Source: Epithemia pelagica (Eukaryota > Protista > Bacillariophyta). From it: DNA of 64,000 bases. Location of the stretch: positions 1,550,001 to 1,614,000 of the forward strand of contig OX337234.1 of the NCBI GenBank assembly GCA_946965045.2, in the 5' to 3' direction. Positions 7,581 to 64,000 of this stretch are shown here, in pieces. Both the position numbers and the translations under genes were made by a program. The notes under the pieces were generated by a model. It was not told the origin of the DNA, ran no database searches, and saw nothing but the letters and a program-made list of their open reading frames with translations. Position 1 is the first letter of the stretch. Each line of letters opens with the position of its first letter.

Positions 7581-7850
7581 TCGTCCAGGTGGAAGTATAA
7601 CCTCGCAACTCTGCAAGAAGGGCCTTTGCGCTTATTAGTGGAGAGTTCAGCTCTATCCATAATCCATATTGCTCCAACGACTTGCTCTTCTAAGAGTAGG
7701 AGTACAATAGAGGGTGATTAGACGTGCTATGTTGTGTCGGTTTTAGTCCAGTAGAGCTGAATAATGACGACCCATGTGCGATTAGATGTATGGATCTTTT
7801 CTCCAGAACGCTACTCCTAGAAGATCTCTCAAGACAGATATAACAAAGGG

Positions 7851-8579: not shown

Positions 8580-8764
8580 AACAATTGGGCTATCTCGCTA
8601 GAGGATCATTTGAAGCTTCGAGGGCGGAGGCTTTCAAAACAACCGCTCCTGTTCAATGATATATGGGTCTAATCTTGACACAGATGACTCCTCTTTCTAT
8701 TCAGTGGCGAGGATCTTGAGAAGAAAAGTGTGATCATACACACCAAACCGAAACGGTGTACGGC

Positions 8765-10297: not shown

Positions 10298-10693
10298 GGT
10301 GCGGAATACTTCTTCAGGTTGGTCTATTGCAAGAGGTCGTCACAGTCACGCACTGATGAAGAGATCGTGTGAGGGTTTCTGCTCTGCGCTTTGTTGTGAG
10401 TTGGTCCGGCGTTGTGTGATTTGAACCGTCGTGCCGAATCATCGTACCAAAGAGAGCCAGCCGCTCCATGGATCTAGCGCGTAAGGTCTCGTAAGCGACC
10501 GATTAGCGACACGAATTTTATGGAATCTTTTTTTGAATTTCAAAAACATGAGTGGGCCCAAACCCACACATCAACATTTCTGATGGATCACAGAAGATCC
10601 CATTGCGACAACGCCAATAGCTGTGGGATCGTCCCTTGTCATTCCGTGTGTTTCCTAGACGCTGTGTGAACCAACCATTTGTCATCCTCCAGA

Positions 10694-12862: not shown

Positions 12863-12967
12863 TTTGATGATGTGTCTAGTGAATAAAACCAGTTAACCCT
12901 TTAAGTAGTTAAAACACCCCCTATCATTTCTAAATGAGACAAACGATGAATGAGTTCATAACTTGTT

Positions 12968-37519: not shown

Positions 37520-37633
37520 TGTTGAAGCCGGGCGAGCCACGTCGCCAAAATGTGAGGGAATTAGCGAATGTGTGAAAGTTCCCAAGTAGATGTGAAAGAT
37601 ATTATAGTTTTGATTTACCGCGAAATTTCAGCA
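37520..37633 (+). repeat. 5' LTR (114 bp)
   Basis: Identical to the 3' LTR except for a 26-bp deletion after TGTTGAA. Confidence 0.95.
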
Positions 37634-37690
37634 GTTTATCAGACCCAACGACGAGTTTTTCACGTGCAGTACAAAGATTGATTGACGACG

Positions 37691-39284: not shown

Positions 39285-39296
39285 CAAGGTCTGGCG

Positions 39297-42200: not shown

Positions 42201-43790
42201 CCTGGTTGGAATCATGCGTCTGGCCATCTTGTATGGGACGTGAAGATGGACTTCACGAGAAAGGCAAGGTGGGTACTTGATGGCCACAAGTGCCCCAATC
42301 CTATAGGGTCAACCTTTGCCGGTGTTGTGTCTCGAGAAAGTGTCCGCATAGCGTTCACATATGCAGCACTGAATGGGTTGGATGTGTTTGCGGCTGACAT
42401 CCGCAATGCATATCTCCAAGCTCCGTCGTCCCAGAAGGATTATGTGATATGTGGTCCTGAGTTTGGACTCGAAAACGTCGGCCGTGTGGCACTCATACAT
42501 CGAGCATTGTATGGGGGAAAAACGGCGGGAAAGGACTTTAGGAACCATCTGCGCTCCTGCATGCATCACCTAAAGTTCCAGTCCTGCCCAGCGGACCCTG
42601 ATGTATGGATGAGGCCAGCTGAAAAGTCGGATGGAGCAACCTATTATGAGTATGTGCTACTATATGTCGATGATGCGCTAGTGGTGAGCGAGAACGCTGA
42701 ACGCATTCTACGTGATGAGATCGGGCGATACTTTGAGCTGAAAGAGGAGTCAGTTGGACCTCCCACGCTCTACCTTGGTGGTCGAGTCCGAAAAGTCACA
42801 CTGGATAATGGGGTGAAGGCATGGGCCTTTAGCTCATCGCAATATGTCCAAGCGGCCGTAAGAAATGTTGAGGAGTACCTTGGTCGAGAAGAAAACCAGA
42901 GGTGGAAGCTACCAGCTAAGGCAGACACTCCAATGCAATCAACATATCGACCAGAGCTCGACGTGACGCCCGAATTGACACCAAAATTGGCATCGTACTA
43001 CCAGTCCCTGATTGGGGTGCTGAGGTGGATTGTTGAGTTGGGAAGAGTTGATATCTGTCTGGAAGTGTCGCTCCTCTCATCCCATCTTGCATTGCCGAGA
43101 GAAGGCAACTTTGGTCAGGTCCTCCAAATCTTCTCTTATTTGAAGAAGTACCACAATACGGAATTGGTATACGATCCGTCTGATCCCGTAGTGGAAGAGA
43201 GTGATTTCGAGCGAAAGGATTGGACAGCATCCGAGTTTGGGCATGTTGATGGGAAGGAAGAGTTACCACCGAATATGCCTGAGCCTAGAGGACAAGGTTT
43301 CATTATCCGAGCGAAAGTCGATGCAGATCACGCGTTGGATACCGTGACAAGGCGCTCACGGACTGGTTTTCTTGTTTATCTAAACAGTGCACTGGTGCAT
43401 TGGTGGAGCAAGAAGCAGACAAGTGTCGAATCTTCATCTTTTGGTTCAGAATTCATTGCGATGAAGCAATGTTGTGAATATCTGAGAGGACTCCGTTACA
43501 AATTGAGGATGCTGGGAATACCATGTGATGGGCCAGCGCTCATATATGGCGACAACCAGTCAGTCTTAGCCAATACCACCATTCCCGATTCCACATTGAA
43601 GAAAAAGAGTCAAAGCATAGCCTTTCACTTTGTTCGTGAGGGATCAGCGCGGGATGAATGGAGGACAACCTATGTAAACACGCACAATAACGAAGCGGAC
43701 CTTCTTACGAAACTGTTGCCAAACGGTGAAAAGAGAGAGGGTTTTGTGCGCAATCTACTGCATCACATCTTCGGATCTAATGCAGAGTGA
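39297..43790 (+). CDS. pol: copia pol (protease, integrase, chromo-like module, reverse transcriptase, RNase H); open 1497 codons
   Basis: ELDSHAN (protease); DTLFA...DMSGE...WSNKAE (integrase); ADIRNAYL and LYVDD (RT); VDADHA and IYGDNQSV (RNase H). Confidence 0.95.
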   Translation: MNISSTTSRGGGQSLQPDTTTWDPGKIQISQQHFAALVAASDMTHDDMEEMSTDGGSRTELDSHANMPVVGRNVYVLNWTGRTVDVSPFSPDYSTTTAELVDAALKFDCPYEGKTYILVVRNAIYVKAMEHNLIPPFLMREAGIIVNDKPKIHTVDPTTDDHAVVFPTTGFRIQLSLWGVFSFFSTQQPSEDDLMAGLDTYVLTPTIWNPHSDAYATNEANMLDWEGNMREPRDRVTVIIDDIPDDKDEHGRYTISSMEAEAIDGVCQCRAQMDARSADGWDKSTNHLSVISSTLSESNMARAMEERAEFGYDAIGIGELTAPYDDDPLIVTDASSSEEQSDGSNDELDENDWMELEMSDDLDNIFMSSTVDASNPRGVDAAHLSKIWRISHEDATRTLAATTQNSMRPMDPSLSQNYGTNDRMLRYRRINDYFFMDTLFATSKGGKSSRGNTCCQLFVTDKGFIYVVPLKRKSEVMHAVKQFAKEIGAPQAIICDMSGEQMKPDVKLFLNDIGTTLRALEEGTPWSNKAELYIKLMKEAVRKDMRESHSPLPFWDYCLERRVRIYNLTARDHPKIWGTNPYTMTMGEEGDISNLCQYKWYEWCYCREHTAPFPHNQEVLGRVLGPARGEGNEMAQWVLKANRRVVPRRSVRPLHASEENSPTEIKKRQLFDKLIERRYGTSTSPPPKISKPNDDEFENYEDNDEPSRPVPEIEDMVDTNGRLLNQLPAYDRLLQAEVQMQLGEEYRTGKVTRRALGPDGKVTGKYDHNPFLNSMIYEVEFADGQVREYSANLIAENMLTQVDSEGFSTTIMEGIVDHRRDDAVAVPKNEKYIITRSGQRRLRKSTAGWKLLIRWKDESESWIKLSEMKESHPVETAEYAKAKGIDDEAAFCWWVPYTLKKRDAIIAAVKTRVRKTTHKYGIEVPTSVEHAKELDRRNGNTMWMDALAKEMYNVGVAFEVLDEGQKAPPGWNHASGHLVWDVKMDFTRKARWVLDGHKCPNPIGSTFAGVVSRESVRIAFTYAALNGLDVFAADIRNAYLQAPSSQKDYVICGPEFGLENVGRVALIHRALYGGKTAGKDFRNHLRSCMHHLKFQSCPADPDVWMRPAEKSDGATYYEYVLLYVDDALVVSENAERILRDEIGRYFELKEESVGPPTLYLGGRVRKVTLDNGVKAWAFSSSQYVQAAVRNVEEYLGREENQRWKLPAKADTPMQSTYRPELDVTPELTPKLASYYQSLIGVLRWIVELGRVDICLEVSLLSSHLALPREGNFGQVLQIFSYLKKYHNTELVYDPSDPVVEESDFERKDWTASEFGHVDGKEELPPNMPEPRGQGFIIRAKVDADHALDTVTRRSRTGFLVYLNSALVHWWSKKQTSVESSSFGSEFIAMKQCCEYLRGLRYKLRMLGIPCDGPALIYGDNQSVLANTTIPDSTLKKKSQSIAFHFVREGSARDEWRTTYVNTHNNEADLLTKLLPNGEKREGFVRNLLHHIFGSNAE

Positions 43791-43925
43791 GTCAATCAGT
43801 GGAGTAGGTACGACATTGAACCACTGTGTGAGGGTGGATGTAACAAGATGTGAACCATCCTAAACTGGAAGAAACTAACAAGGCACCAGCTATGACAAGA
43901 CGAAACTACACAAGGTAGTTCCGCC

Positions 43926-43935
43926 TTGAGAGGAG
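43926..43935 (+). promoter_or_regulatory. Polypurine tract of the copia element
   Basis: TTGAGAGGAG lies immediately before the 3' LTR TG. Confidence 0.8.
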
Positions 43936-44075
43936 TGTTGAAATAACGGGTGCCAAACGGCTAAGATAGCCGGGCGAGCCACGTCGCCAAAATGTGAGGG
44001 AATTAGCGAATGTGTGAAAGTTCCCAAGTAGATGTGAAAGATATTATAGTTTTGATTTACCGCGAAATTTCAGCA
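43936..44075 (+). repeat. 3' LTR (140 bp)
   Basis: TGTTGAAATAACG...TTTCAGCA. Confidence 0.95.
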
Positions 44076-47000
44076 AACACGCAGGATCAAAATTCGGAGC
44101 CCTATAGCACAGTGATTGAGAGTCTTACAAGTGCCCTCCAAAAAATAGATACGCAGCAGAACCAGAATAGTCAGAGATCACTGTCACTTCGGCTTCTGAT
44201 TAGAGCTGGATTCGCTGCCAACAAGAATAATATTGTAGGTGCATCACAAGCATCCTTCTTGACAAGGAATCACTCCAGGTTCCTATTTTCCCACCAGTTT
44301 GCGTATGTTCCTCTATGTGACCTGGTCAAAATTATCACAACGAATTTCGTTGATAGAACTTATGTTCGATCATACAAGGGCAAGCCATATGCTGATTCAT
44401 GGCTTTGCATTACCTATGTCGACCACAAGCTTTATCTGATCTCTGCCCAAAGCTATTCTTTGAACAATATGAGGTAATCAGAGGGTCTTCAAATGGCGAT
44501 GATGAGTTATTTGACTTTGAGGACAATCGACATTTCACTCATCCGGCACAAGTCAATAGACGCGAAGATGGGGAAATTTCCAGATTCCAAGTGATCCGGG
44601 AGCGGAAAATACCACGACTGGCATGGGTCCCTAACCATTGTCTTGTTCTTGATGCCGCAAAATTCGACGGGACAGACATTTTAACCTGTGAGAATATCAC
44701 TGAAGAAATGGAGGACTATGCATTACACATTTTTGCTCTTTGTCACTCCTACATTTGTGTTGATGATTTGAAGTTGAATGATTCCTTTGTCCTGAAACTC
44801 CGACAACTTTTTGAAGCTGGACATTTAGACGACCATGTTCAATATCTTCAAAACATGCAGGATGCAAGGGGCAACTACATGAGAGTCACACCTACCGAGG
44901 ATGACCTTCAAGCGTGTAGCATTCCTTTTCAATATGATGATGAAGATGATGGTATAGACGAGAATACCAAAAAATCAGGAAACGATTTGCCACCTGAGGA
45001 AGAAGAGCAGTTACAAAGTTTGCTGTTACAAGGACAAAAGCTTGACATTTTCCTTTCATTGATTGAAGATGACCTTCAAGCATTTGACCCAACTCAAGGT
45101 GTCAATTCCAATTCCTTTCAAGAAAATTTTGTGCCGTCGTCCATTTCATTCAAAAGCGTTCAGTTGCGAGGAAGCTACAGATGTGGGACAGATCAACTAT
45201 GCAATCTTCCATATCAATATTCAGATCAGGCTACTAGTCCCTTTCTTCCCCTAGATTCGACTGATGCGGTAGATCTTGATGGCAACAATGTTGATGAAGA
45301 TGAACTAAACATCATGGAAATGCCGCCAATTCCAAGTCCCACAGACATTGTTCACGTCCTTTTACAGCGGAATTGTTTGTCGCCAGAAAGATCTATTCAA
45401 GTCATGGCTTCATCAAAACGACTAGCAGAAGCAAATGGATCTGCTCTAAGCATATGTGCATGGGCTGAAAAAACTGGATTAGACAGTGAACAAAGAAGGG
45501 CATTTGAGGTTTTTGCCGGTTCATTCGTTCTTTCATTTTTCAACGACGCAAATGAAACTACCACACCAGGACCCCAGCTCCCACGAACTCGGAATAGAGT
45601 TTTCCTCAAAGAAAAAGTGCGGCTTTTGAAATTGTGCGGTAAGCTCCCAGTGAGGGCGACACAGCAGAGAATGTGTGATATGAATCATAAAAACTTGGTG
45701 TGTTTTCTTCATGGACCTGGTGGGAGTGGTAAATCGGCCGTTCTTGAATTACTACAGCTATATGCACGAGAATATTGCAATCATTTGAATTACGAGTACA
45801 ACAGTGAAACAATTGTGGTAACGGCAATGAGTGGTGTTACCGCAACTCTCATTGGAGAACGTACTACACATTCTGCTGCTCATCTTAACAAGAAAGCGTC
45901 AAAGATTCCATATGAAGACAAGTTCCGTTGGAAGCACACACGTCTCTTGATCGTGGATGAGATCTCTTTCGCCTCGAAATCTGAAATCAAAACACTGGAT
46001 GCTCATGTCAAATTAGTCAAGGACGCACCTTTCAAAGATTATGGCGGGATTGATGTTATCTTCTGTGGAGATATGAGGCAGCTGCAACCAGGCGGAGGAA
46101 AAGTCAAAATTTATGAATGTGAATTTCCTGAGTTCCATGGAATGATCAATTGTTACCTTGAATTGAATGCTATGCATCGATTCTCAAATGATGTCATGTG
46201 GGGAGAATTATTGTGCAGGTTTCACAATGGCAAACTGACTGAAGACGACATGGACACAATAAACACGCGGGTTGTCGATCAAAACGGCTTGTCACTACCA
46301 AATGATATACGGTATGTATCATACAGGAATATAGACAGGGTGTCTATTAATACTGGACTCTTCCTCAAGCATCTACAATCAGCACCTGATCAATCCTATA
46401 TCGAGAACAACTGTGTTCTTGTCCTTTCAAGCTGCTTGAAAATCAAAGAAGGTGATTGCCAATACCGGTCACCATCGAATGCCTGGGAAACGTATCTTTG
46501 GCAAAGCTGTGGGGAAGGGCAGTGCAAACCATCGGGATTTTCAGGTCGGTTTGACCCAGCAATGCTGCTATTCTACAACCGTCCAGTGTTGGTGAATAAC
46601 AACAAAAATGTGGAAAAGATGATTGCAAACGGTACTCGAGCATTTCTTCAGACAATTCATTTGAAGCCCGATGAAACATACACAATGTGCACTGTCGATT
46701 CCATTGCAGTTCCTACTGTAAGAGCTGACCAAATTCTGAAGGTAGAACTCCACTTTGAATCACCTAATGCAACAGGCAACACATTCAAAATTGCACCAAA
46801 AGAACACACCTTCATTGCCGATGTACCCTATCCCCGATCTCTCCAAACTGGGAGTAATCAAGACACCACACAACAACTTCATATGAAGGGACTACAACTT
46901 CCTTTCATTTGCAATAATGCAACAACGGGACACAAGCTTCAAGGAGCTTCGGTACAAACTTTGTTTGTACACACACGGTCAATGGTGGAGAATTGGTCAT

Positions 47001-47599
47001 ATGTGGTTCTCTCCAGGGTAAAAACTATCTCGGGATGGATGGTATCGGGTCCACGGCCTATAGTGCCAGAAAAGAGACTCCTCTATCGAAACTGAAAGCA
47101 AAGCTTCCATATACTATATGAAAGTCGCTAGGTTTAGGGTTCCTAGCTTAATACGGCCCCGCGGCTTCCACCTAGTTCTTACTTACGGCTAAAGTAACTT
47201 AGTAGGAAAGTTAGGAGCTTTTTTGCACTTTGCCCGAGTTTTTGGTGGTTTTACCTAGTTTCCCCTCTAACTTACTTACTGCTTCTCTAAAACCCTATTA
47301 CCCATTTTTTAAGCTCATTGGTCTGGGGCTATTGCTAGCGGAATTAACCTGGACGGTAGTAGAAGTTTACATGTACATGTAGCTGTTTCAACATCATATC
47401 TAGTCTATGAGTAGAACAAGCCTATGTCAATGCGGGTACAAGTTTACATGTATCTCTTCATAGCAGTATCGATCATGCAGCATCCATCCAACCTTTAGTT
47501 ACCTTTATATCCTAGCTTGTTGCTGACATAGAATGTTTTCACCTGATTGGGTAGACTGTGTGTGGTTGAAAGAGGAAGATACTGCACCTGCCCGTGGAG

Positions 47600-50500
47600 A
47601 AGGGTAGCATATGGATGGCTAACAGGTGGAAGTATGACAAGGGTTTCTCCTCGCATCATTAGTGTTAGGGTACCAAATATGGATGGCTAACAGGTGGAAG
47701 TATGACAAGGGTTTCTTCTCACATCATTAGGGTTAGGGTACAAAATTGTGATGGGCAGTTTATTCCCCACCCCCCAGACTCATTCATTCTGACGCACGGT
47801 ATTTCTGCAGATAGCAGAACAGAAAACCAAGGAGATGATGTTTTGTTAGTAGTAGCGGGCTAAACTATTTAGCCAATCTTAAATCCTAATCTTTGATGAC
47901 ATTTGAATCTAGCAGACTGGTACTTATTGTTGGTAGTTGCTAGTAGTAGTCGTTAAGCATCTCGATCCAAATGATCAATTCTAACGCTCATTTTTTCTGC
48001 TTATCGGTCATCGGAAAGAACCGACCCGAACAAACTGATGTATTCTGATGCACAAGATTAGGGTTCAAAGATTATCTAGTACTGTATGAAAAAGAATCCG
48101 ACCCGAACAAACTGATGTATTCTGACACACAAGATTCCACATCTCGAGAGGAAACAGAACCAACCTGAATCAAAAGTAAGACAGTATTGATATTGATGAA
48201 CCATACATAAATAAAGAAGAATAAGAGAGATGAATTCAGATGGCATTTCTGGATATTCAGAAACCGGCTGATTCTTTGTCATCACTAGGCAGCTTGGAGA
48301 AAGGTGAGGTGACACCAGGTTGTCAGGATGATTCTTCGTTCATGGTACTTGACGAACTTGCCTACCAATGGATGGACTCATAATTTTGGCTTTCCATTGA
48401 TTGTTATTACGCTGGTACGTATTCACTGCGTAAATTTGTTTTTGAAATTTCAGTGAAGATTCCGAACCTAACATTTCTTCATATGCTTCAATCATGTTAC
48501 AATGGACATGTGAACTGCTGATACCTGGTGATCATGTACGGTGTGGTTGTCACTGGAATTTGTCTTATCCCGATGATTTCTAGATCCTCTCCAAAATGAA
48601 TCCTTTCTATTCCAAATGCATATTTATATGCGCTATCCTATCCTTTCCAATTCATCATATCCAATCCAATTCCATTTACAAAAATATATTCATTCCAAAA
48701 CCTATCCTATCCATTACCAATATCCTATGCAATCATTGTCGTCATCAGCCTTGATCTTAATATAACATAATGCTACTTCCTAGTCCTTAATGCTGTGAAC
48801 AACACCGCAAGCGAAAATATCCTAACTTAGATCCAACTCAAGGTGTCAACCCAAATTCCTTTCAAGAAAAGTTTGTGCCGTCCTCCATTTCCTTCGAAAA
48901 AATTCAGGTGCAAGGAAGCTACGGATGTGGGACAGATCGATTGTGCAATCTTCCATATCATTATTCAGATCACGCTACTCCATTTCTTACAATACATTCA
49001 CTGGACATGGTAGAAGTCAACAACAATGTTGATGATGAAGAACTCAACATGGAAATGCCGCCCATTCCAACGGCGTCAGACATCATCCACGTCCTCTTGG
49101 AACGGAATTGCTTGTTACCAGACAGATCTATTCAAGTCATGGCTTCATCAAGAAGATTGCCAGAAGCCAATGGATCTGCTTTAAGCATGCGTAAATGGGC
49201 TGAAAATACAGGATTAGACAGTGAACAAAGAAGGGCATTTGAGGTGTTTGCCAGTTCGTTTGTTCTTTCCTTTTGCAATGACGCAAATGGATCAACCACG
49301 CCGGGAGTCCATCTGGCAAGAACTCGAAACAGAAGTTTCCTTAAGGAAAAACTGAAGCTTTTGAAATTGTGGTAAACTCCCTGTTAGGGCAACACAGCAG
49401 AGAATGTGTGATTTGAAGCACAAAAACTTGTTATGTTTTCTTCATGGGCCTGGTGGGAGCGGTAAATCGGCAGTACTGGAATTGCTGCAACTGTATGCAA
49501 GAGAATATTGTGATCACCTGAATTACGACTACAACAGTGAAACGATAGTGGTTACGGCAATGAGTGGTGTTGCCGCTACTCTCATTGGCGGACGTACTAC
49601 ACATTCTGCTGCTCATCTTAACAAGAAAGCGTCAAAGATTCCATATGAAGACAAGTTCCGTTGGAAGCACACACATCTCTTGATCGTGGATGAGATCTCT
49701 TTTGCCTCGAAATCTGAAATACAAATACTCGATGCTCATGTCAAATTACTCAAGGATGCACCTTTCAAAGACTATGGCGGGATTGACGTCATATTCTTTG
49801 GAGACATGAGGCAACTTTAACCCGGCCAAGGACAAGTCAAACTTTACAAATGTGAATTTCCTGAATTCCATGCAATGGTCAATTGCTACCTGGAATTAAA
49901 TGGTATGCATCAATTTTCAAACGATGTCACGTGGGGAGAATTATTGCGCAGGCTTCGAAATGGTACATTGACCGAAGATGACATTGACACAATAAACACA
50001 CGAGTAGTCGATGAAAACGGCTTGTCACTACCACATGACATACGATATGCATCATACAGGAATATAGACAGGTTGTCTATTAATACTGGACTCTTCCTCA
50101 AGCACCTGCAATCGGCACCAGATGAGTCCTATATCAAGAACAATTGTGTTCTCATTCTTTCCAGTTCTTTGAAAATCATACATGGTGATTGCCAATACCG
50201 ATCACCATCAAATGGTTGGGAGACCTATTTTTGGGAAAACTGTGGAGAGGGACAGTGTAAACCATCAGGATTTTCAGGTCGATTTGATCCAGCAATGTTA
50301 GTATTCTACAACCGTCCAGTATTGGTGAATACCAACGAAAATGTTGAAAAGATGATTGCAAATGGTACTCGGGCATTTATTGAATCCATTCATTTGAAGC
50401 CCGATGAAACATACACGATGTGCACTATTGATGACTTTCAAGTTCCTACTGTGAGAGCTGGCCAAATTCTAAACGTGAAACTTCGCTTTGAATCACCCAA

Positions 50501-50834
50501 TGCATTCAGCAGTACATTTGAAATTGCACCAAAAGAGCACAGTTTCATTGCAGAAGTACCCTATCCCGGGTCTCTCCAATCTGGTAGTGACAACAATACC
50601 ACACAGTCTCTTCATATGAAGGGACTACAACTTCCTTTCATTTGCAATAATGCAACAACGGGACACAAGCTTCAAGGAGCTTCTGTACAAACTTTATTTG
50701 TACACACATGTTCAATGGTGGGGAATTGGTCGTATGTTGTTCTCTCCAAGGTGAAAACTATCTCGGGATTATTTCTAGGAAAACCATTGGAGAAACGATT
50801 CCTCAAAGTTCTCAATGCTATTCCCGACGTCTAA
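47600..50834 (+). mobile_element. Second, internally deleted and degraded Helitron2-like copy
   Basis: The upstream region matches 32600-34830. Rep start remnant at 48770; helicase fragments 48875..49375, 49404..49820 and 49875..50834, with a frameshift and a nonsense codon. Confidence 0.85.
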
Positions 50835-51599: not shown

Positions 51600-53150
51600 C
51601 CCTCCTATCATCCCACAAGACAATTTTCAACGCTCTGAACGACTGGATTGGTGGTTCTGTTTGAAAAAGGGCAAAGACACCAAGTTGGTGCACCCATTTC
51701 ATTCTCCCATCAATTTCCATCGACCAAAACTGGTTGGATTGCTGGATTGCCGCTGCTTCTTCCCTCCTATTATCCCATAAGACCATTTTCAACCATCTGA
51801 ACGGTCGGATTGGTGAGGATTCTATTGAACAAAGGGCATAAGACACCAAGTTGGTGCACCCACTTCCTTCACCCCTCCATTTCCATCGACCAAGACCCTG
51901 TTGGATTGCTGTGTTGCTACTCCTTCTCAATTGGAACAAGGGCCGAGACACCAAGTTGGTGCACCCATTTCCTTCACCCCTCCATTTCCGTCGACCAAGA
52001 CCCTGTTGGATTGCTGTGTTGCTACTCCTTCTCGATTGGAACAAGGGCCGAGACACCAAGTTGGTGCACCCATTTCCTTCACCCCTCCATTTCCATCGAC
52101 CAAGACCCCGTTGGATTGCTGTGTTGCTACTCCTTCTCGATTGGAACAAGGGCCGAGACACCAAGTTGGTGCACCCATTTCCTTCACCCCTCCATTTCCA
52201 TCGACCAAGACCCTGTTGGATTGCTGTGTTGCTACTCCTTCCCGATTGGAACAAGGGCTGAGACACCAAGTTGGTGCACCCATTTCCTTCACCCCTCCAT
52301 CTCCATCGACCGAGACCGTGTTGGATTGCCGTGTTGCTACTCCTTCCCGATTTGAACAAGGGCCGAGCCACCAAGTTGGTGCACCCATTTCCTTCACCCC
52401 TCCATCTCCATCGACCAAGACCCTGTTGGATTGCTGTATTGCCACTCCTTCTCGATTGGAACAAGGATCAAGACACCAAGTTGGTGCACCCAATTTTCAC
52501 TCCTCCATCTCCACCGACCAAGACCTTGTTGGATTGCTGTGTTGCTACTCCTTCCCGATTGGAACAAGGGCCGAGACACCAAGTTGGTGCACCCATTTCC
52601 TTCACCCCTCCATCTCCATCGACCGAGACCGTGTTGGATTGCCGTGTTGCTACTCCTTCCCGATTTGAACAAGGGCCGAGCCACCAAGTTGGTGCACCCA
52701 TTTCCTTCACCCCTCCATCTCCATCGACCAAGACCCTGTTGGATTGCTGTATTGCCACTCCTTCTCGATTGGAACAAGGATCAAGACACCAAGTTGGTGC
52801 ACCCAATTTTCACTCCTCCATCTCCACCGACCAAGACCTTGTTGGATTGCTGTGTTGCTACTCCTTCCCGATTGGAACAAGGGCCGAGACACCAAGTTGG
52901 TGCACCCCTCTCCTTCCCTCCTTCATCTACATCAACCAAGAAGACCCCATTGGATTGCTGTATCTTGATTGGTGGTTCTGTTGAAGGGCCGAGCCACCAA
53001 GTTGGTGCACCCATTTCCTTCACCCCTCCATCTCCATCGACCAAGACCCTATTGGATTGTTGTATTTGCTACTGATTCTTGACTGGAAGGACCGAGACAT
53101 CAAGTTGGTACACCCATTTCCTTCAATCCTCCATCCCTATTGACCAAGAC
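51600..53150 (+). repeat. 105-bp minisatellite, 14 core motifs, with a duplicated 313-bp trimer
   Basis: CACCAAGTTGGTGCACC-type cores at 51678, 51844, 51949, 52054, 52159, 52264, 52369, 52474, 52577, 52682, 52787, 52890, 52995 and 53098. Confidence 0.95.
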
Positions 53151-53269
53151 CCTCCAGGGTTTCCATCACGCAAGCTTGAGAAACGGTAGTATCAAGTTGC
53201 ATCGGAACCCTGCATCGAAAGAAAATTTCTCCTTGTTTCTTCCCCAAGCTGATTGAATCGCACGTTAAT

Positions 53270-56200
53270 ATGGCTGATTCGGTAGAAGATTCCGATCAAT
53301 ATTTCCCAGACTTGATATGTTATGAATACACAATCGAGTGGTATCGTTCTGTTTATTCCAACACTGATAATTGGACAGATTTCTCCACTACATATGGAGG
53401 TGAAACCATATTCGTATCCCTCTTGCGCTGTGGATCAAGTATTTTCAGTGATATCGCCTCGCATGCTGCTGTTTGTTTCCCGAAGATACTGAGACTTGTA
53501 GAGACGATCGAAGAACAACAAGAGGGAAACAAGAGTGACGGAGCTGGTAGTTTTATTTCACCAGGAATCGACCTATTCGAACAAACTCTATATGGAGACG
53601 CACTTCGTCTGTGGGACAAGGAATTCCCGTGCACGACAAGATCAAAGTCGAGCGCAAGCTTTACTCGATCCCTCAAGGTGTTTCTTGGAGCCCATCCTAT
53701 GCTCGCTGATATTGTCCTCAACTCGTATTCGGTGGAGAGACGGCTTAATGTCGTGGCTGCAAAAATATTGGACTACATGACCTCTGATAGATCAAAGTTT
53801 CCGAAAGACAGAACAATACCAGTCCGAGAAATGGTTTGGAGCGTTCAACATATGGCAGCTGTCTATCGGGTATTGGAATCTGACTCCTATGAAATGGAAG
53901 GAGTCGATGTTGAAAAAGCATTAGCCCTTACACTTCCTGATTGCTGGTTTCGTCCTTATTTTGACATACCAAGAGCTGCTAAGTATCCCGCAAACGACTA
54001 TTCCAATTTGGCGGTTCTAATTTCATATTACCAGACGACGGAACGGGAATACGCTACAAAGACGAAGGAGTATCAGAAGGGGCGACATGAACAACGATCT
54101 CAAGACAGGAAACGCCGTAAACAAGCGTCAGACAGTAAATGTGATCTTGCAACAATTTCTACCATTTTCACTGTTTCAAATAACGAGAGCAAATCACCAT
54201 CTCAGTCTCTGTCAGCGACCGAGGAGGATCGGAGTTCCATTTTCGATACTCTTGCATTGAAAAAGAAACCACAAAAAGGAAAACAAGACGACAAAAAATC
54301 TTCCTCTCAATCGAAGGTGGGTCTGTTGGAAAGTAAATCACATGTTGACCATGGTAGCGACAAACCTAAAGGAATACCAAAGAAACCACCTCCTCTCAAG
54401 AATAAACCTGGTCCATCAGACGACCTTGCTTCTTTCACTAACGACCGTTTGATTCATATGGCTAACTGGTCCCTCAAACAGTCGATGTCAGCGATCAATG
54501 AAGCTTGGGATCTCTGTAAAGAAAGTGCCGTTAGACGTAAGGGAAGCATCCATGAAGTTGTTTTGCGATTTGTCTGTACCTGTGCTTGCTGTTCCAACAA
54601 GAATGGTTCTCTACAACATGACAATGGGAAAATGGACGTCCTTTTTGTCCCACATCGCCAGTACAGACGAAACCTTTTGCTACGGACGAATACTCAAGAG
54701 ACGACTAAGTTTAAGGGGATCCCTCCCCTCATATTCAGGTTGATGCTTGTGCTGGTGGTTCATAAATGGCACAACAAGTCCGTTTCCTTTGAGCAAATCG
54801 ACGAAGATAGTCTGAGAATGGACACAACGACTGCAATGGATTTGAGTTCGTCGTCTTCCGATACTACATTGGTCGTCGTCACTACCAAGTATGAAGCTTT
54901 TGATCCCGTCTTAATCCTCGTACAAGCACATCAAAGAGAAGTGTTGATATTCGATCCATTATCGACAAGGGATATTCGCTCGTGGAGGCCTACAGTGATT
55001 CGATGTCTACGGAAACTAAGGCTATTGGACGACGATAAGAAAATCCAATCATTCTTGAGCGTTGATATAAAGGAAGAGCTCGTTGGATGTGACTGGAGAT
55101 TCATTTATAAGAAGTATCCGAATCCGGTGGCACCAAGTGCGTGTCCGCTTCCCCAAGTATCAATAATATGTGTGATCGACGAGATCCTGTCAAAGGCGTC
55201 CCCTAATATGTCCTGTGATCAGATGATGGGGAAATGGGCTCAAGAATTGCCATCGTGTAGGCGAGAATGTCACAAGGCCTGCAATCATATCGTGAGTACG
55301 GCTATCAATAGAGCGAAACGTGATTCGACTCTGCGTGTATGTTTCAAGGACGTCAATGACGATACACGTCCAAGGATCAAACGCAGTCGCCGGTTTATAA
55401 TGGAAGGGAAAGATCGAGGGGAGGTAATGGAAGATGTGCTGGATTCCGACGATGAACGATTCGAGGACATTAAAGTGATACAAGAGATTACAGGAGCGGA
55501 CAAGGCGCTCGAACGACTTCGCGAAGATCGGCGATTTTTGGATCTGGTACGAACATTGAACAATGAAGATCAGAAAGAGGCACTCTGTTCCACTTGTGGG
55601 ACCTCATTGCTTAAAAAGGATCTGGATAGAAGTCGGACCTGTTCTATCGTGAGTTGGACAAGGCAAGAAACCTCCAACTGTCCTCATTATCATTGTCCAA
55701 CATGTACTTTCATCCGGAATTCGGTGAAGAATCGATTTTGTTCCATATGTGGTCATAGTCATGCTGAGCTAATACCACACGATCTACAAGAGACAGAATT
55801 AATCGCGAAGAAAGACAAGACAATCGTCCTAGACAAATATGATGAAGACTCCGAACAATATTGTGCCATATGCCATGGACAGCGTCCTAACGACTGTCGG
55901 ATCGAGAGATGCGGGCACAAGTTTTGTCGGGTGTGTCTTGGTCATGTCCTTACCACCGAAAAACAAGTTCCTATGGGGAAACAGAAATCGACACCTCCTG
56001 AAATGAACGAGAGTTGCCCCTTGTGCAACGGAGATATTGCTTCGATTACGTACACCAATGCACATGATGGTTCAGTTGAAGAAGTTGGTGTGTCAAAAGA
56101 GGAACATCGTGGTCTCTACAGACCGGTCCCTGTATTTCCAGAGACAGCATGGGGTCGTGTACCGTTGGAAACTCTGCGTTTCATGAGTAAAGAACAACAA

Positions 56201-56278
56201 AGGGAGAAGAATAGGAGAGACCAAACTGATTCTTCTACTGTCACGATCAGTAACACAGAAGCGAAAAGGCAAGTCTGA
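53270..56278 (+). CDS. 1002-aa ORF with two C3HC4 RING-like fingers and a degenerate Ulp1-like segment; possibly exon 1 of a fusion gene
   Basis: CSTC...CPHYHCPTC...CSIC (55586-55750) and CAIC...CGHKFCRVC...CPLC (55862-56025). Confidence 0.7.
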   Translation: MADSVEDSDQYFPDLICYEYTIEWYRSVYSNTDNWTDFSTTYGGETIFVSLLRCGSSIFSDIASHAAVCFPKILRLVETIEEQQEGNKSDGAGSFISPGIDLFEQTLYGDALRLWDKEFPCTTRSKSSASFTRSLKVFLGAHPMLADIVLNSYSVERRLNVVAAKILDYMTSDRSKFPKDRTIPVREMVWSVQHMAAVYRVLESDSYEMEGVDVEKALALTLPDCWFRPYFDIPRAAKYPANDYSNLAVLISYYQTTEREYATKTKEYQKGRHEQRSQDRKRRKQASDSKCDLATISTIFTVSNNESKSPSQSLSATEEDRSSIFDTLALKKKPQKGKQDDKKSSSQSKVGLLESKSHVDHGSDKPKGIPKKPPPLKNKPGPSDDLASFTNDRLIHMANWSLKQSMSAINEAWDLCKESAVRRKGSIHEVVLRFVCTCACCSNKNGSLQHDNGKMDVLFVPHRQYRRNLLLRTNTQETTKFKGIPPLIFRLMLVLVVHKWHNKSVSFEQIDEDSLRMDTTTAMDLSSSSSDTTLVVVTTKYEAFDPVLILVQAHQREVLIFDPLSTRDIRSWRPTVIRCLRKLRLLDDDKKIQSFLSVDIKEELVGCDWRFIYKKYPNPVAPSACPLPQVSIICVIDEILSKASPNMSCDQMMGKWAQELPSCRRECHKACNHIVSTAINRAKRDSTLRVCFKDVNDDTRPRIKRSRRFIMEGKDRGEVMEDVLDSDDERFEDIKVIQEITGADKALERLREDRRFLDLVRTLNNEDQKEALCSTCGTSLLKKDLDRSRTCSIVSWTRQETSNCPHYHCPTCTFIRNSVKNRFCSICGHSHAELIPHDLQETELIAKKDKTIVLDKYDEDSEQYCAICHGQRPNDCRIERCGHKFCRVCLGHVLTTEKQVPMGKQKSTPPEMNESCPLCNGDIASITYTNAHDGSVEEVGVSKEEHRGLYRPVPVFPETAWGRVPLETLRFMSKEQQREKNRRDQTDSSTVTISNTEAKRQV

Positions 56279-56375
56279 TCTATATTATTAGTACTCTCCA
56301 TCAAGAGAAGAGACGTTCTAGTTTCAGGTATTTGGCATTTCTATCCGCGTACTAACTATGTCTTTGTACTACAAG

Positions 56376-58401
56376 AAGTTCGGAAACGACAAGCACACAT
56401 CCTAGAGCGGAGGTGACATCCATAAAGAAGAAACATATTCGTCCCACTTTCGAAGATATGGCATCGGATCAGACGATTTCGAGACTCACATGTACACAGG
56501 AGACCTATGCCAAGTACGAAAAGAAGAAAACGCAACGTATAAGTGAAACAGTGGTCGCCATGTCGCATCGGAACGAAAGTGCACATGAAAGAATGTGCTA
56601 CTTTGTTTTGGACAAGGACATCGATCGAATAAGGATGTTATCGCATCTACTGCAGCGTTGCTTTGGAAGTTACGACGATCAAGATTGTTTTGGTTTGTCG
56701 TTCGAAAAGGATATGATACAACGGAAGGTCGATATGAAAGATATCCCGAGTGTCTTTGCACGTATCCCAGAAATATCCAACAAGGCTATGGATGATGTTG
56801 TGGAGACAAGAGATGACGTTGTCAGTCATTCGAACATTATACCAGAATGTTGTCCTATGATTGTTGCTCAAATCCCGGTGGGTCTTGTAACTAAAACGAT
56901 CCACAATGCATTCATATTGGAATGTACCTTGTCCAGGACAAGATATAGAGAAATCAGGAAGAAGACAACACATGTGTCGTCCTCTATATTCGAAGATCCT
57001 GTCATGATGATTCGGACTAACAAAAATTTATGCCTTGACGAAAATGATCACCTCTTCAGAGATATCATTATCCTCTTCCCTTTGGCTGGGGTTTTTTATA
57101 CATGTGTGCGTCAATTTCAAGAACTATCAAGGTCGTCCGACATCACATCGTCATCAGTCCCACTACCGTTGTCTTGGTTACGTCTGCGACACAAAGATGG
57201 CCAACCTGCAAGTAATGCATTCTTGAAAAAGATTCATCGTTGTTGGAGTCTAGATTGGGGTGAACATCTTACTAATAATGGCAAAACTGTGAAGGAATGT
57301 TACCAATGGTCCGATGTGGAGGATGGGAGCCCACTTTTACCGCCTGACGTGTACCTCGATGACAAGGGAAAGATCGAAAAGCCAGGGAATAAACAGTCAA
57401 TGACACATCACATGTCACGGGAACAATATCGAACAAGGCTGATTATAAACAGGAATGACTCAGATAAGAAAGGGAGTCGGAGATATGTTAGTGGTGCTTT
57501 GCATCGAAACCTATGGTTGCAAATGTCGTCCGGTACACACCCAAGGCCACTGGTATACGACCATCGTATTCGGGGAAACATTACTTTCATTGTTCGGACA
57601 CGCCGAAATGATGGGAGACCAGAGTCACTTAGTTACATTCGAGTGACATCCCTGGTACGGAAGGACCAGACGTTGTTGGACCTATTACACCACAGAGCAA
57701 GGGAATTTACACGTACTGGGTCTCTGAGAAAGGCGGCCAATGCCAGATGTAATAAGGGAGACTTGGGATCTATGACTACTGTTGGTAATACTGCGGCAAG
57801 AGGAAACGGTTCTACTTTCGTTTCCGAGAAATTATTTACAAAGGACAAGACATTATCGATGATACTGCCGAAAATAAGTACAGCGGCAAAAAGGTTCTGT
57901 GAACGCGAATATCCTGGGGTGATTCCAACATTCCGGTATCTAGAAGATTCAGCTGGCGAAGAAATGCCTAGTGAATTCGGAGGAAGAGTCGGAGGTATGA
58001 CCTCAGCCATTACCCTGAGTTTGAACCTCATGAACACGACACATTATGATGTTCACGATGGTTCTGTTTCATTCGCAATCTGGACAGAGACAATCCCAGG
58101 TGACTCCCAAAATTGGTTCTTTGTTTTGCCGAATATTCTTGTGGAGTATGATGGTACTACATACCATGGTCTTTGTATACAACTATTTCATGGGGTTTCG
58201 GTTCTATGGGATGGACGTGTGATCCGGCATGGAACGTCAATACACACACAAAGACAACATAAAGATGGGAACATGAAGAACGACACTATTAGTTGGTTTT
58301 GGGCAGTAAGTTCTATGTCTATGAATGCAACTGTCAACGAAACAAGAGAGGACCATGGTATAACCAAGACGGTTCAAGGCATTCGTAGCGGAACATTATA
58401 A
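56376..58401 (+). CDS. TET/JBP-like 2OG-Fe(II) dioxygenase ORF; possibly exon 2 of the RING gene (first own ATG at 56458)
   Basis: LSLNLMNTTHYDVHD (HxD, 58042-58050), FFVLPN, LWDGRVIRHGTS (distal His 58228-58230). Confidence 0.65.
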
Positions 58402-58939
58402 ATTCTTTCTGGATGCATTCATCACCAAGGAAAAACAAATTCAGGGAGCATTCCACGTCTTTTGCTTCTTACGAGCACTCTGGTGTGATACACCAGCAGC
58501 ATGTTTCTTTGGATTTTCCTGTGCTATATGATAACATGCAGTAAAAATAGGCATATAGTTGCGAAAGGAGCAACCAGGTGGTGAAGAAATCAGCCACAAT
58601 GCCCATTGTTTCTCGGTGTGCTATCACTGCTACGAAGACAAAACGAAACTTCAACATCAAATCGTGTATTCGAGATGAGATTCTATATTGCAACAGTATT
58701 CAACCAAGACGAGTCTTCCATCTTTTATACGATATCGAACGGTCTTCTCGAAGAGTAATGGTAAGAGGATTTCTGTTTGCGGTTGCAAGAGGATGTACTT
58801 CGGAGAAAACAACTGATCCTGACTATATCTCAGTTCTTATCGTTTTTATGGGGAAAAATTCAAATAACGCTAAGAATTTCTGAGTCTTGTTTGCTTTGTC
58901 ATACGATTCAATGGAGGATAAAATGAGCCTACGAAATTT

Positions 58940-61900
58940 TTAGTCAATGTCAAGGCCAACGCTATATCGGTATGGTCTATTGCAAGCCTTTCTCGTCACA
59001 GATCACGAGATCCGATCCTATGGTATCCATAAAAATGATACACTAAGGGTCTCTTCCAAAATCTGGACCGATTCCATGAAGAGAAGGATCTCTTTGCTCC
59101 ATGTCCATACAATTTTGGCACGGCGACAACGCCAAACCGATCTGATCTATTGCAAGCCTTTATCTTGACGGCACATGAGATCAGAGCCTATGGTATACAT
59201 GGCTATGATATCCCGAGGATATGTACCAAGACCTGGGTCGATTCGATGAACAGAAAAATGTCTTTCCTCCAAGAAGTCTATGGAAGTTTGGGACGACGAC
59301 AACGCCGCACCGGTGTGGTCTACAACAAGAATTTAGGTCAATGATAGACGAGATCAGCGCCTATGACGTCCATGCCTATGATACCACAAGTGTCTCTACC
59401 AGTTTTGAAGCGATTCAATTTATAGAAGGGTGTCTTTGCTCCATGTCCATGGAAGTTTGGGACATCGACAACACGACACTGGTATGGTCTACAACAAGAC
59501 TTTTGGTCCGCGATAGACGAGTTCAGAGCCTATGACATCCATGCCTATGATACCCCAAGTGTGTCTACCGAAATTTGGAGCGATTCAAGTTATAGAAGGG
59601 TGTCTTTGCTACATGTCCATGGAAGTTTGGGATATCGACAACGCGAGACTGGTATGGTCTAAAACAAGACTTTTGGTCTGCGATACATGAGTTCAGAGCC
59701 TAAGACGTCCATTCCTGTGATACCCCAAGTGACTCTACAGAAATTTCGAGCAATTCAAGTTATAGAAGGGTGTCTTTGCTCCATGTCCATGGAAGTTTGG
59801 GACATCGACAACATGACACTGGTATGGTCTACAACAAGACTTTTGGTCCGCAATAGACGAGTTCAAAGCCTATGATCTCCATGCCTATGATACCCCAAGT
59901 GTGTCTACCGAAATTTGGAGCGATTCAAGTTATAGAAGAGTGTCTTTGCTCCATGTCCATGGAAGTTTGGTACAACGACAACGCCACACCGATATGGTCT
60001 ACAACAAGACTTTTGGTCCATGGTAGATGAGTTCAGAGCCTATGATATCCATGCCTATGATACCCCAAGTGGCTCTACCGAAATTTGGAGCGATTCAAGT
60101 TATAGAAGGGTGTCTTTGTTCCACGTCCATGGAAGTTTGGGACATCGACAACACGACACTGGTATGGTCTACAACAAGACTTTTGGTCCGCTATAGACGA
60201 GTTCAGAGCCTATGACATCCATGCCTATGATACCCCAAGTGTGTCTACCGAAATTTGGAGCGATTCAAGTTATAGAAGAGTGTCTTTGCTCCATGTCCAT
60301 GGAAGTTTGGTACAACGACAACGCCACACCGGTATGGTCTACTACAAGACTTTTGGTCCATGGTACACGAGTTCAGAGCCTATGACGTCCATTCCTGTGA
60401 TACCCCAAGTTTGTCTACCGAAATTTCGAGCGATTCAAGTTATAGAAGGGTGTCTTTGCTCCATGTCCATGGAAGTTTGGGACAACGACAACGCCACACC
60501 GGTATGGTCTACAAGAAGACTTTTGGTCCGCGATTACGAGTTCAGAGCCTATGATCTCCATGCCTATGATACCCCAAGTGTCTCTACCGAAATTTGGAGC
60601 GATTCAAGTTATAGAAGAGTGTCTTTGCTCCATGTCCATGGAAGTTTGGTACAACGACAACGCCACACCGATATGGTCTACAACAAGACTTTTGGTCCAT
60701 GGTAGATGAGTTCAGAGCCTATGATATCCATGCCTATGATACCCCAAGTGTGTCTACCGAGATTAGGAGCGATTTAAGTTATAGAAGGGTGTCTTTGCTC
60801 CATGTCCATGAAAGTTTGGTACAACGACAACGCCACACCGGTATGGTCTACAACAAGACTTTTAGTCCGCGATAGACGAGTTCAGAGCCTATGACATCCA
60901 TACCTATGATACCCCAAGTGTCTCTACCGAGATTTGGAGCGATTCAAGTTATAGAAGAGTGTCTTTGCTCCATGTCCATGGAAGTTTGGTACAACGACAA
61001 CGCCACACCGGTATGGTCTACAAGAAGACTTTTGGTCCGCGATTACGAGTTCAGAGCCTATGATCTCCATGCCTATGATACCCTAAGTGTCTCTACCGAA
61101 ATTTAGAGCGATTCAAGTTATAGAACGGTGTCTTTGCTCCATGTCCATGGAAGTTTGGTACAACGACAACGCAACAGTGGTATGGTCTACAACAAGACTT
61201 TTGGTCCGCGATTACGAGTTCAGAGCCTATGACATCCATGCCTATGATACCCCAAGTGTGTCTACCAAAATTTGGAGCGATTCAAGTTATAGAAGGGTGT
61301 CTTTGCTCCATGTCCATGGAAGTTTGGGACATCGACAACACGACACTGGTATGGTCTACAACAAGACTTTTGGTTTGAGATGCACGAGTTCAAGGCCCAT
61401 GACATCCATACCTATGATACCCCAAGTGTCTCTACCGAGATTTGGAGCGATTCAAGTTATAGAAGAGTGTCTTTGCTCCATGTCCATGGAAGTTTGGTAC
61501 AACGACAACGCCACACCGGTATGGTCTACAAGAAGACTTTTGGTCCGCGATTATGAGTTCAGAGCCTATGATATCCATGCCTATGATACCCCAAGTGTCT
61601 CTACCGAAATTTAGAGCGATTCAAGTTATAGAACGGTGTCTTTGCTCCATGTCCATGGAAGTTTGGTACAACGACAACGCCACACCGGTATGGTCTACAA
61701 CAAGACTTTTAGTCCGCGATAGACGAGTTCAGAGCCTATGACATCCATACCTATGATACCCCAAGTTTCTCTACCGAGATTTGGAGCGATTCAATTTATA
61801 GAAGGGTGTCTTTGCTCCATGTCCATGGAAGTTTGGGACATCGACAACGCGACACTGGTATGGTCTACAACAAGACTTTTGGTCCGCGATAGATGAGTTC

Positions 61901-64000
61901 AGAGCATATGATATCCATTCCTGTGATACCCCAAGTGTCTCTACCGAAATTTGGAGTGATTCAAGCTTTAGAATGGTGTCTTTGCTCTATGTCCATGGAA
62001 GTTTGGTACATTTGGAAGTTTGGGACATCGACAACACGACACTGGTATGGTCTACAACAAGACTTTTGGTCTGCGATACACGAGTTCAAAGTCTATGACA
62101 TCCATGCCTATGATACCCCAATTGTCTCTACCGGAATTCGGAGCGATTCAAGTTATAGAAGGGCGTCTTTGCTCCATGTCCATGGAAGTTTGGGAAATGG
62201 ACAACGCGACACTGGTATGGTCTACAACAAGACTTTTGGTCTGCGATAAACGAGTTCAGAGCCTATGACGTCCATTCCTGTGATACCCCAAGTGACTCTA
62301 CAGAAATTTCGAGCAATTCAAGTTATAGAAGGGTGTCTTTGTTCCATGTCCATGGAAATTTGGTACATCGACAACACGACACTGGTATGGTCTACAACAA
62401 GACTTTTGGTCCGCGATAGACGAGTTCAGAGCCTATGACATCCATGCCTATGATACCCCAAGTGTCTCTACCCCAAGTGTCTCTACCGAACTTTGGAGCG
62501 ATTCAAGTTATAGAAGGGTGTCTTTGCTCCATGTCCATGGAAGTTTGGGACATGACAACGCAACAGTGGTATGGTCTATAACAAGACTTTTGGTCTGCGA
62601 TAGACGAGTTCAGAGCCTATGACATCCATGCCTATGATACCCCAAGTGTCTCTACCGAACTTTGGAGCGATTCAAGTAATAGCAGAGTGTCTTTGCTCCA
62701 TGTCCATGGAAGTTTGGGACATCCACAAGGCGATACTGATATGGTCTACAACAAGACTTTTGGTTCGCGATAGACGAGTTCAGAGCCTATGACATCCATG
62801 CCTATGATACCCCAAGTGTGTCTACCGCAATTTAAAGCAATTTAAATTATAGAAGTTTGTCTTTGCTCCATGTCCATGGAAGTTTGGGACATCGACAACG
62901 CAACAGTGGTATGGTCTATAACAAGACTTTTGGTCCGCGATAGACGAGTTCAGAGCCTATGACATCCATGCCTATGATACCCCAAGTGTTTCTACCGAAA
63001 TTTGGAGCGATTCAAGTTATAGAAGAGTGTCTTTGCTCCATGTCCATGGAAGTTTGGTACAACGACAACGCCACACCGGTATGGTCTACAACAAGACTTT
63101 TAGTCCGCGATAGACGAGTTCAGAGCCTATGACATCCATGCCTATGATACCCCAAGTGTCTCTACCGAGATTTGGAGCGATTCAAGTTATAGAAGAGTGT
63201 CTTTGCACCATGTCCATGGAAGTTTGGTACAACGACAACGCCACACCGGTATGGTCTACAACAAGAGTTTTGGTCCGCGATAGACGAGTTCAGAGTTTAT
63301 GATATCCATGCCTATGATACCCCAAGTGTCTCTACCGAAATTCGGAGCGATTCAAGTTATAGAAGGGTGTCTTTGCTCCATAACCATGGAAGTTTGGGAA
63401 ATGGACATCGCGACACTGGTATGGTCTACATCAAGACTTTTGGTCTGCGATACACGAGTTCAGAGCCTATGACGTCCATTCCTGTGATACCCCAAGTGAC
63501 TCTACAGAAATTTCGAGCGATTCAAGTTATAGAAGGGTGTCTTTGCTCCATGTCCATGGATATTTGGTACATCGACAACACAATACTGGTATGGTCTACA
63601 ACAAGACTTTTGGTCCGCGATAGACGAGTTCAGAGCCTATGACATCCATGCCTATGATACCCCAAGTGTGTCTACCAAAATTTGGAGCGATTCAAGTTAT
63701 AGAAGGGTGTCTTTGCTCCATGTCCATGGAAGTTTGGGACATCGACAACACGACACTGGTATGGTCTACAACAAGACTTTTGGTTTGAGATGCACGAGTT
63801 CAAGGCCCATGACATCCATGCCTATGATACCCCAAGTGTGTCTACCGAGATTTGGAGCGATTCAAGTTATAGAAGAGTGTCTTTGCTCCATGTCCATGGA
63901 AGTTTGGTACAACGACAACGCCACACCGGTATGGTCTTCAACAAGACTTTTGGTCCGCGATAGACGAGTTCAGAGCCTATGACATCCATGCCTATGATAC
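58940..64000 (+). repeat. 170-bp tandem satellite, ~30 copies, continuing past the window end
   Basis: GAGTTCAGAGCC-type motif at 59519, 59689, 59859, 60029, 60199, 60369 and onward. The first 2-3 units are much more diverged. Confidence 0.97.

Follow-up and report, generated by a model that had tools for sequence, protein, structure and literature searches.

A putative TET/JBP-fold dioxygenase without a last-strand arginine, probably fused to a RING finger, in the diatom Epithemia pelagica

Introduction

Which co-substrate and which base would be served by a TET/JBP-like protein whose final strand lacks the arginine that normally binds 2-oxoglutarate (2OG)? This question is raised by an open reading frame (ORF) in a stretch of 64,000 nucleotides (hereafter the window) from the diatom Epithemia pelagica (NCBI GenBank assembly GCA_946965045.2, contig OX337234.1, positions 1,550,001 to 1,614,000 of the forward strand), in which an earlier note, made from the letters alone, had claimed a TET/JBP-like double-stranded beta-helix (DSBH) with an intact HxD...H triad at 57700-58320. 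The account that we favour, and that taken as a whole we consider fairly likely, is that this ORF encodes a very divergent TET/JBP-fold Fe(II) dioxygenase with 5-methylcytosine (5mC) as its most likely substrate, a non-canonical co-substrate pocket and a probable RING fusion.

The TET-like ORF and its family

The four motifs behind the claim of a TET/JBP-like domain lie together at 58024-58305, within the interval given by the earlier note, and share a single plus-strand frame of the TET-like ORF. The relevant features, in window positions, are as follows:

56413..58401, plus strand: TET-like ORF of 662 codons (GTG start called by the ORF tool; first in-frame ATG at 56458; stop codon at 58399-58401)
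56815..57747, plus strand: conserved N-terminal region without a recognised fold (ORF residues 135-445)
57670..58398, plus strand: predicted TET/JBP-fold DSBH dioxygenase domain (ORF residues 420-662)
58024-58050, plus strand: motif NLMNTTHYD
58117-58134, plus strand: motif FFVLPN
58207-58236, plus strand: motif WDGRVIRHGT
58279-58305, plus strand: motif NDTISWFWA

The TET-like ORF belongs to a large, unannotated family, since an exhaustive HMMER search of 1.84 billion cluster representatives (cut-off E<=1e-3) retrieved 616 that are related to it, 358 of them at E<=1e-10. This number of relatives, together with the conserved metal ligands and the confidently modelled fold, indicates that the motif match is not due to chance. 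A word-indexed protein search with the ORF returned three proteins only, i.e., a 98% copy (P0001) and two shortened paralogues, all in the same ENA assembly, and a second such search with the alignment returned unnamed family members only. A tblastn search of phage genomes, aimed at a canonical Tet_JBP sequence, gave no match.

The column statistics below derive from an alignment (A2) of the C-terminal domain of 72 relatives with residues 420-662 of the ORF in the window, yielding 73 sequences in total, in which domain numbering equals ORF numbering minus 419 (e.g., H125 is H544). None of the 72 relatives carries a Pfam annotation, and standard annotation misses the family because Pfam recognises none of its members. 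Matches to PF20515 (Tet-like) stayed below threshold, both in one of the 73 aligned sequences (E 0.0018) and in a helicase-fused relative outside them (P0113; E 2.6e-4). This relative (1607 aa) and P0110 (1165 aa) were the two DEAD/Helicase_C fusions among eight longer relatives checked, and their helicase-plus-hydroxylase layout loosely recalls that of JBP2. In the literature searched, neither TET-like enzymes of diatoms nor a TET-fold family devoid of the last-strand arginine were described.

Fold of the C-terminal domain

The AlphaFold2 (AF2) model built from A2 was confident (predicted local distance difference test score, pLDDT, 91.2; predicted template modelling score, pTM, 0.88), with values of 91-92 in the blocks that contain the last strand (residues 201-220). 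The structure model, a check proposed in the earlier note, agreed with its claim of a TET/JBP-like DSBH: human TET2 was the best Foldseek match (E 4e-8, template modelling (TM) score 0.55-0.60, vs. about 0.40 for AlkB), and in the VIA structure comparison the top 14 matches were all TET enzymes. The VIA Z scores were:

NgTET1: 13.1
TET2: 12.8 (221 residues aligned, 17% identity)
CcTet: 11.9
CMD1: 11.8 (18% identity)
PolD: 10.7
FTO: 10.5
AlkB: 10.4
PHD2: 9.9

Language-model features placed Tet_JBP in 22 of the 30 nearest clusters (scores up to 0.96). An ESM-Atlas fold search returned phage Tet_JBP (TM 0.67), basidiomycete PF20515 (TM 0.66) and an uncharacterised cluster (TM 0.70), the latter having mostly Bacillariophyta among its members with taxonomic records. 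A DSBH nearest to the solved TETs was thus found, and a sequence-profile match to TET/JBP was not.

The same comparison bears on whether the domain might instead belong to the AlkB or prolyl-hydroxylase branch, which we consider very improbable. The TETs lead AlkB, FTO and PHD2 by just 2-3 Z units, and the better AlkB or prolyl-hydroxylase match that would have spoken against a TET-like assignment did not arise. Moreover, the AlkB and prolyl-hydroxylase matches cover fewer residues (158-191 aligned vs. 186-223 for the TETs) at lower identity (5-14%), and lack the pattern of an N-terminal Arg plus an Asp five residues after the first iron-binding His (His+5). The last strand offers no Arg for an AlkB-type motif either, so that neither the best fold match nor the last-strand Arg motif of the AlkB/ALKBH/FTO enzymes was found.

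Iron site, base-reading residues and substrate

The residues discussed below map to the window as follows (counts refer to the 73 aligned sequences):

57745..57747, plus strand: Arg445 (domain R26; Arg in 71/73)
58042..58050, plus strand: HxD iron ligands His544 and Asp546 (H125, 72/73; D127, 72/73)
58057..58059, plus strand: Asp549 at His+5 (D130; invariant, 73/73)
58081..58083, plus strand: Trp557 at His+13 (W138; Trp in 69/73)
58228..58230, plus strand: distal iron ligand His606 in RHGTS (H187; 73/73)
58279..58308, plus strand: last DSBH strand, Asn623-Val632 (NDTISWFWAV), without Arg or Lys

The iron-binding triad is therefore intact, as had been claimed, and nearly invariant in the family. 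Asp549 occupies the His+5 position, at which CMD1 D350, NgTET1 D234 and TET2 N1387 hydrogen-bond the N4 of 5mC (PMC7854593). Arg445 would correspond to TET2 R1261 and CMD1 R244, two arginines that stack against the base and also touch the proximal carboxylate (PMC7854593). They are equated because of the spacing to the HxD motif (R26 lies 99 residues ahead of it, and CMD1 R244 101 residues ahead of its own) and because of the start of the structural alignment (the VIA alignment ranges put model residue 1 at TET2 1234 and CMD1 221). Judged by offset and alignment range, the protein thus has both the His+5 Asp/Asn and the N-terminal Arg of TET/JBP enzymes, and its last strand carries an aromatic pair (Phe629 and Trp630).

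In the mechanism that we propose, the domain encoded by 57670-58398 would be catalytic, and would flip 5mC out of the DNA and modify its methyl group. We infer 5mC to be the substrate because Asp549 would recognise the amino group of cytosine while Arg445 would stack on the base. Another diatom, Phaeodactylum tricornutum, has 5mC confined to its transposons (PMC12344493), so that such a substrate would be available.

The invariant Asp also bears on the alternative that the enzyme acts on thymine in DNA (as JBP does), on RNA or on adenine methylation rather than on 5mC. It matches the acceptor of the cytosine N4 amino hydrogen bond, and docking to CMD1 suggests that the His+5 Asp disfavours thymine (PMC7854593), for which reason we deem another substrate unlikely. 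This alternative nevertheless draws on the replacement by Ala or Val, throughout the family, of the base-edge His/Arg with which solved TETs read O2/N3 of cytosine (PMC7854593), and on the breadth of known TET activities, as thymine can also be oxidised by NgTET1 and TETs (PMC7854593, PMC12344493) and N6-methyladenine is also demethylated by CcTet (PMC11040006). The fusion of some relatives to DEAD-type helicases, loosely in the manner of JBP2, points the same way.

The last strand and the co-substrate pocket

The four solved TETs have the last-strand motif R-x5-[FY]-x-[HR] in common, with R1896, Y1902 and H1904 in TET2, R289, F295 and H297 in NgTET1, and R410, F416 and R418 in CMD1 (PMC7854593, PMC11040006), and with R385, F391 and R393 in CcTet, of which the R385A mutant is inactive (PMC11040006). 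The family strand, in contrast, reads N-H-x-[YF]-G-x-F-[FW]-A-A-K (N-D-T-I-S-W-F-W-A-V in this copy), so that the earlier note's observation of a final strand without the 2OG-binding Arg is true for this copy and also holds family-wide. Arg and Lys together reach at most 5% in every column from 204 to 213, and at most 21% in any column from H187 to 213. The position of the Arg would correspond to column 204 (Asn in 49/73) with F210 as the stacking aromatic, or to column 205 (His in 37, Asn in 11, Ser in 6 and Arg in 4 of the 73; Asp624 in this copy and His in the 98% copy P0001) with W211 in that role, and neither column is basic. The TET2 sequence around H1881-K1905 would favour column 205 as the counterpart of R1896. 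On the evidence of the alignment, the distal 2OG-clamping Arg is lost across the whole family, and the R-x5-[FY]-x-[HR] motif was not found.

The diatom protein thereby differs from the 2OG-dependent 5mC dioxygenases TET2 and NgTET1 in lacking both their 2OG clamp (R1896 or R289) and their base reader (H1904 or H297), as well as a Cys-rich or CXXC domain and a match to PF12851. It likewise differs from CcTet (a basidiomycete Tet-like protein, PF20515), which needs 2OG and the Arg385 that the diatom family lacks.

A further comparison is with CMD1 from Chlamydomonas reinhardtii (PDB 7CY4-7CY8), a TET homologue that acts as an ascorbate-dependent 5mC glyceryl transferase with 5-glycerylmethylcytosine (5gmC) as product. 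In CMD1, Trp358 (H345+13) takes up the Arg1896 site, where it is in steric conflict with the C5-carboxylate of 2OG, and the authors gave this as one reason why CMD1 cannot use 2OG (PMC7854593). CcTet has L339 (H326+13) at this offset, making a hydrophobic contact with N-oxalylglycine (NOG), and the TET2 counterpart is a valine (PMC11040006). Trp557 of the diatom protein would match the CMD1 Trp358 site, so that a Trp at the distal-Arg site, as in CMD1, is present by offset only.

Several of the remaining ascorbate contacts of CMD1 (R244, H249, S335, T337, W358, T399 and S414; PMC7854593) would find counterparts by the same offsets, R244 corresponding to R26, T337 to S117 at His-8 (Ser or Thr in 73/73), W358 to W138 and T399 to T189 (distal His+2), with uncertain counterparts for S335 and S414. 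CMD1 F371 would correspond to F151, if the loop between has equal length. By these residues, the co-substrate pocket resembles that of CMD1 more than that of TET2, a likeness that does not imply the use of ascorbate. There are also clear differences, as CMD1 keeps its Arg, R410, although this residue points away from the pocket, whereas the Arg is wholly absent from the diatom protein. The latter has no clear counterpart of CMD1 His249 and none of the base-reading Arg418, shows no sequence similarity to CMD1 by HMMER and also has a conserved N-terminal region of 400 residues and unrecognised fold and, probably, a RING-finger exon.

The missing Arg and a Trp at the CMD1 Trp offset suggest that 2OG would be held in a new way, or that a different co-substrate would be used in a CMD1-like manner, possibly giving a different product. 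The suggestion in the earlier note of a TET/JBP-like enzyme with a possibly unusual co-substrate is supported.

The pocket could also be that of an ordinary 2OG-dependent 5mC oxidase, in which other residues hold the distal carboxylate and the products are 5-hydroxymethyl-, 5-formyl- and 5-carboxylcytosine (5hmC, 5fC and 5caC), an alternative that we take seriously without preferring it. Its pocket residues are polar and conserved (N204 in 49/73, H205 in 37/73, Y/F207 in 56/73 and N122, i.e., Asn541, in 69/73), four of the 73 members have an Arg at column 205, and the remaining TET machinery is intact; in CcTet, moreover, this 2OG carboxylate also receives hydrogen bonds from Thr323 and Tyr361 (PMC11040006). 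However, all solved TETs use the Arg, CcTet being inactivated by its replacement (PMC11040006), column 205 of this copy is occupied by an acidic Asp, and a bulky Trp stands at His+13, where CMD1 has the Trp that keeps 2OG out (PMC7854593).

Several observations weigh against the favoured account of a divergent TET/JBP-fold dioxygenase with a non-canonical pocket. The PF12851 profile proposed in the earlier note as a check did not recognise the protein, and neither the whole ORF nor its sub-domains matched anything in Pfam up to E 10. A phmmer search of the protein against all PDB chains found nothing related, and the A2 profile found no TET chain in PDB. The Z-score lead of the TETs over AlkB, FTO and PHD2 is small, and residues were equated by their spacing from the metal ligands and by alignment ranges. 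The equivalent of Arg1896 may be either Asn623 or Asp624. The base-edge reader is gone from the family, and the essential His249 of CMD1 is without a clear counterpart, an Asp being found there by offset. Finally, this particular copy could be weakened by its Asp624, as His is found there in most relatives.

Selection and further copies

The TET-like gene is under purifying selection, as its 19 synonymous and 13 non-synonymous differences from P0001 correspond to a ratio of non-synonymous to synonymous substitution rates (dN/dS) of 0.19. The RING ORF upstream of it gave a dN/dS of 0.63 against L003, the locus that carries P0001. The low ratio of the TET-like gene, its 662-codon ORF without interruption and the retained iron triad make it improbable that the copy in the window is decaying or non-catalytic, being either a pseudo-enzyme or a protein that reads modified DNA. 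Such a fate would be in keeping with its departures from the family (Asp624 instead of His, Gln590 instead of the Lys/Arg found in 49/73, and Ile626 instead of mostly Tyr/Phe), with its location in repeat-rich DNA beside a satellite, and with frame breaks in the TET-like gene of two paralogous loci (L001 and L002).

DNA contigs over 52900-58800 contained numerous variants at 90-99%, in line with the presence of several copies, and yielded no usable junctions. L003 contains a second TET-like paralogue (positions 1-1134; 34% identical to residues 246-633), situated 9 kb upstream of P0001, and a weak Ulp1-like ORF (1824-4190, minus strand) is situated between the two.

Gene structure

Directly upstream of the TET-like ORF, and on the same strand, lies a RING ORF that could be joined to it by splicing:

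53270..56278, plus strand: RING ORF of 1002 codons; probable first exon 53270..56268
about 55862-56041, plus strand: RING finger near the C-terminus of the RING ORF (residues 865-924), with weak Pfam RING matches
56269..56405, plus strand: putative GC-AG intron of 137 nt (donor GCAAGT at 56269-56274; TACTAAC at 56350-56356; acceptor AG at 56404-56405)
56406..58401, plus strand: probable second exon (TET-like), in frame after the splice

The donor AAAAG|GCAAGT at 56268|56269, as read directly from the sequence, is a consensus GC donor in phase 2. The predicted splice would join AG and A into an Arg codon that continues in the TET frame, and the peptide ahead of the first ATG (56458) is conserved in L002.

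The order of a RING ORF followed by a TET-like ORF recurs at four other loci (L001, L002, L003 and L006), of which L003 is collinear with the window from 50827 on, and L001, L002 and L006 are divergent paralogous loci. In L002, whose RING protein is 29-34% identical in the aligned parts, the putative intron (5849-5922) has the same donor 8-mer and the same phase, and an in-frame TAG|A acceptor follows 72 nt further on. L003 (9467-9949) likewise keeps the donor, phase 2, TACTAAC and the in-frame acceptor. Because donor, phase and in-frame acceptor recur in both the divergent paralogue L002 and L003, the two ORFs are probably a single RING-TET gene of about 1660 codons by count. The dioxygenase domain would then form the C-terminal end of a long protein whose beginning is encoded by the RING-finger ORF, the two parts being joined via the GC-AG intron.

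Neither ten longer relatives from elsewhere nor eight other longer relatives showed a RING domain. Assignment of the N-terminus of the RING ORF to Ulp1/PHD was a weak lead (score 0.75) that found no support in Pfam and was not retained. The putative intron of L003 harbours a 340-bp insertion (9485-9824) that is absent from the window and is MITE-like (i.e., resembling a miniature inverted-repeat transposable element), with ends AAGACTG...CAGTCTT and ATAT on both flanks.

Genomic surroundings

The repeat-rich stretch of the window starts at about 16 kb and follows ordinary host genes at 718-12862 (a ubiquitin hydrolase (UCH), a SET-domain protein, a major facilitator superfamily (MFS) transporter and a dihydroxy-acid dehydratase). 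Its main elements are:

34826-47095: Helitron, with Helitron_like_N (Rep) at 34826-37525 and a PIF1 helicase at 44399-47095
39297-43790: Copia-type element (RVT_2) that splits the Helitron
48827-50769: second helicase fragment, 85% identical to 45083-47036
51841-53153: 105-bp tandem array of 12.6 copies, preceding the RING ORF
59276-64000 (window end): 170-bp satellite, following the RING-TET pair

It is not established that this copy is transposon cargo, because no recognisable transposon terminus occurs where the L003 homology begins (50827), the upstream Helitron is not present in the paralogous loci L001-L003, and the neighbouring ORFs of these loci gave a weak Ulp1 match only. Nor could any transposase be tied to the TET-like copy in the window.

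The 170-bp satellite also follows the gene pair in L003 (12760-18813) and, at 66% identity, in L002 (10694-13530), the linkage of gene pair and satellite being conserved across the three loci. For GpC, observed/expected values of 0.57-0.67 were obtained across the RING ORF, TET ORF and satellite (52001-64000), vs. about 0.8-1.0 in the rest of the window. For CpG, the RING and TET ORFs have a ratio of about 1.0, vs. 0.64-0.67 in the Helitron ORFs.

The basidiomycete Tet-like family PF20515 is linked to KDZ/Plavaka-type transposons. In a locus from another sample (L005), the relative P0053 (10001-12574) is arranged tail to tail with a protein of 891 aa (12635-15307, minus strand) that matches Plavaka transposase just under the Pfam cut-off (E 2.5e-5), echoing this fungal link between TET genes and transposons.

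Implications

To our knowledge, CMD1 is the only TET-family enzyme with a co-substrate other than 2OG, and its modified base has been seen nowhere else. A bolder scenario, which we put forward tentatively and regard as rather doubtful, is that what is probably a diatom family has abandoned 2OG for another co-substrate and makes a novel hypermodified cytosine in repeats and satellite DNA, with the RING fusion coupling base modification to chromatin ubiquitylation.

The present family comprises hundreds of clusters at 50% identity and goes beyond CMD1 in that the Arg is gone entirely, although the iron site, the Asp at the cytosine-reading position and the CMD1-type Trp have been retained. The whole of it is unseen by Pfam-based annotation. 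Should its members prove active, so far undescribed DNA modifications may be present on the repeats of diatom-type genomes. The family would also offer a natural experiment on the evolution of co-substrate pockets in DSBH oxygenases, and the RING fusion, if real, would combine a TET-fold enzyme with a domain in a new architecture.
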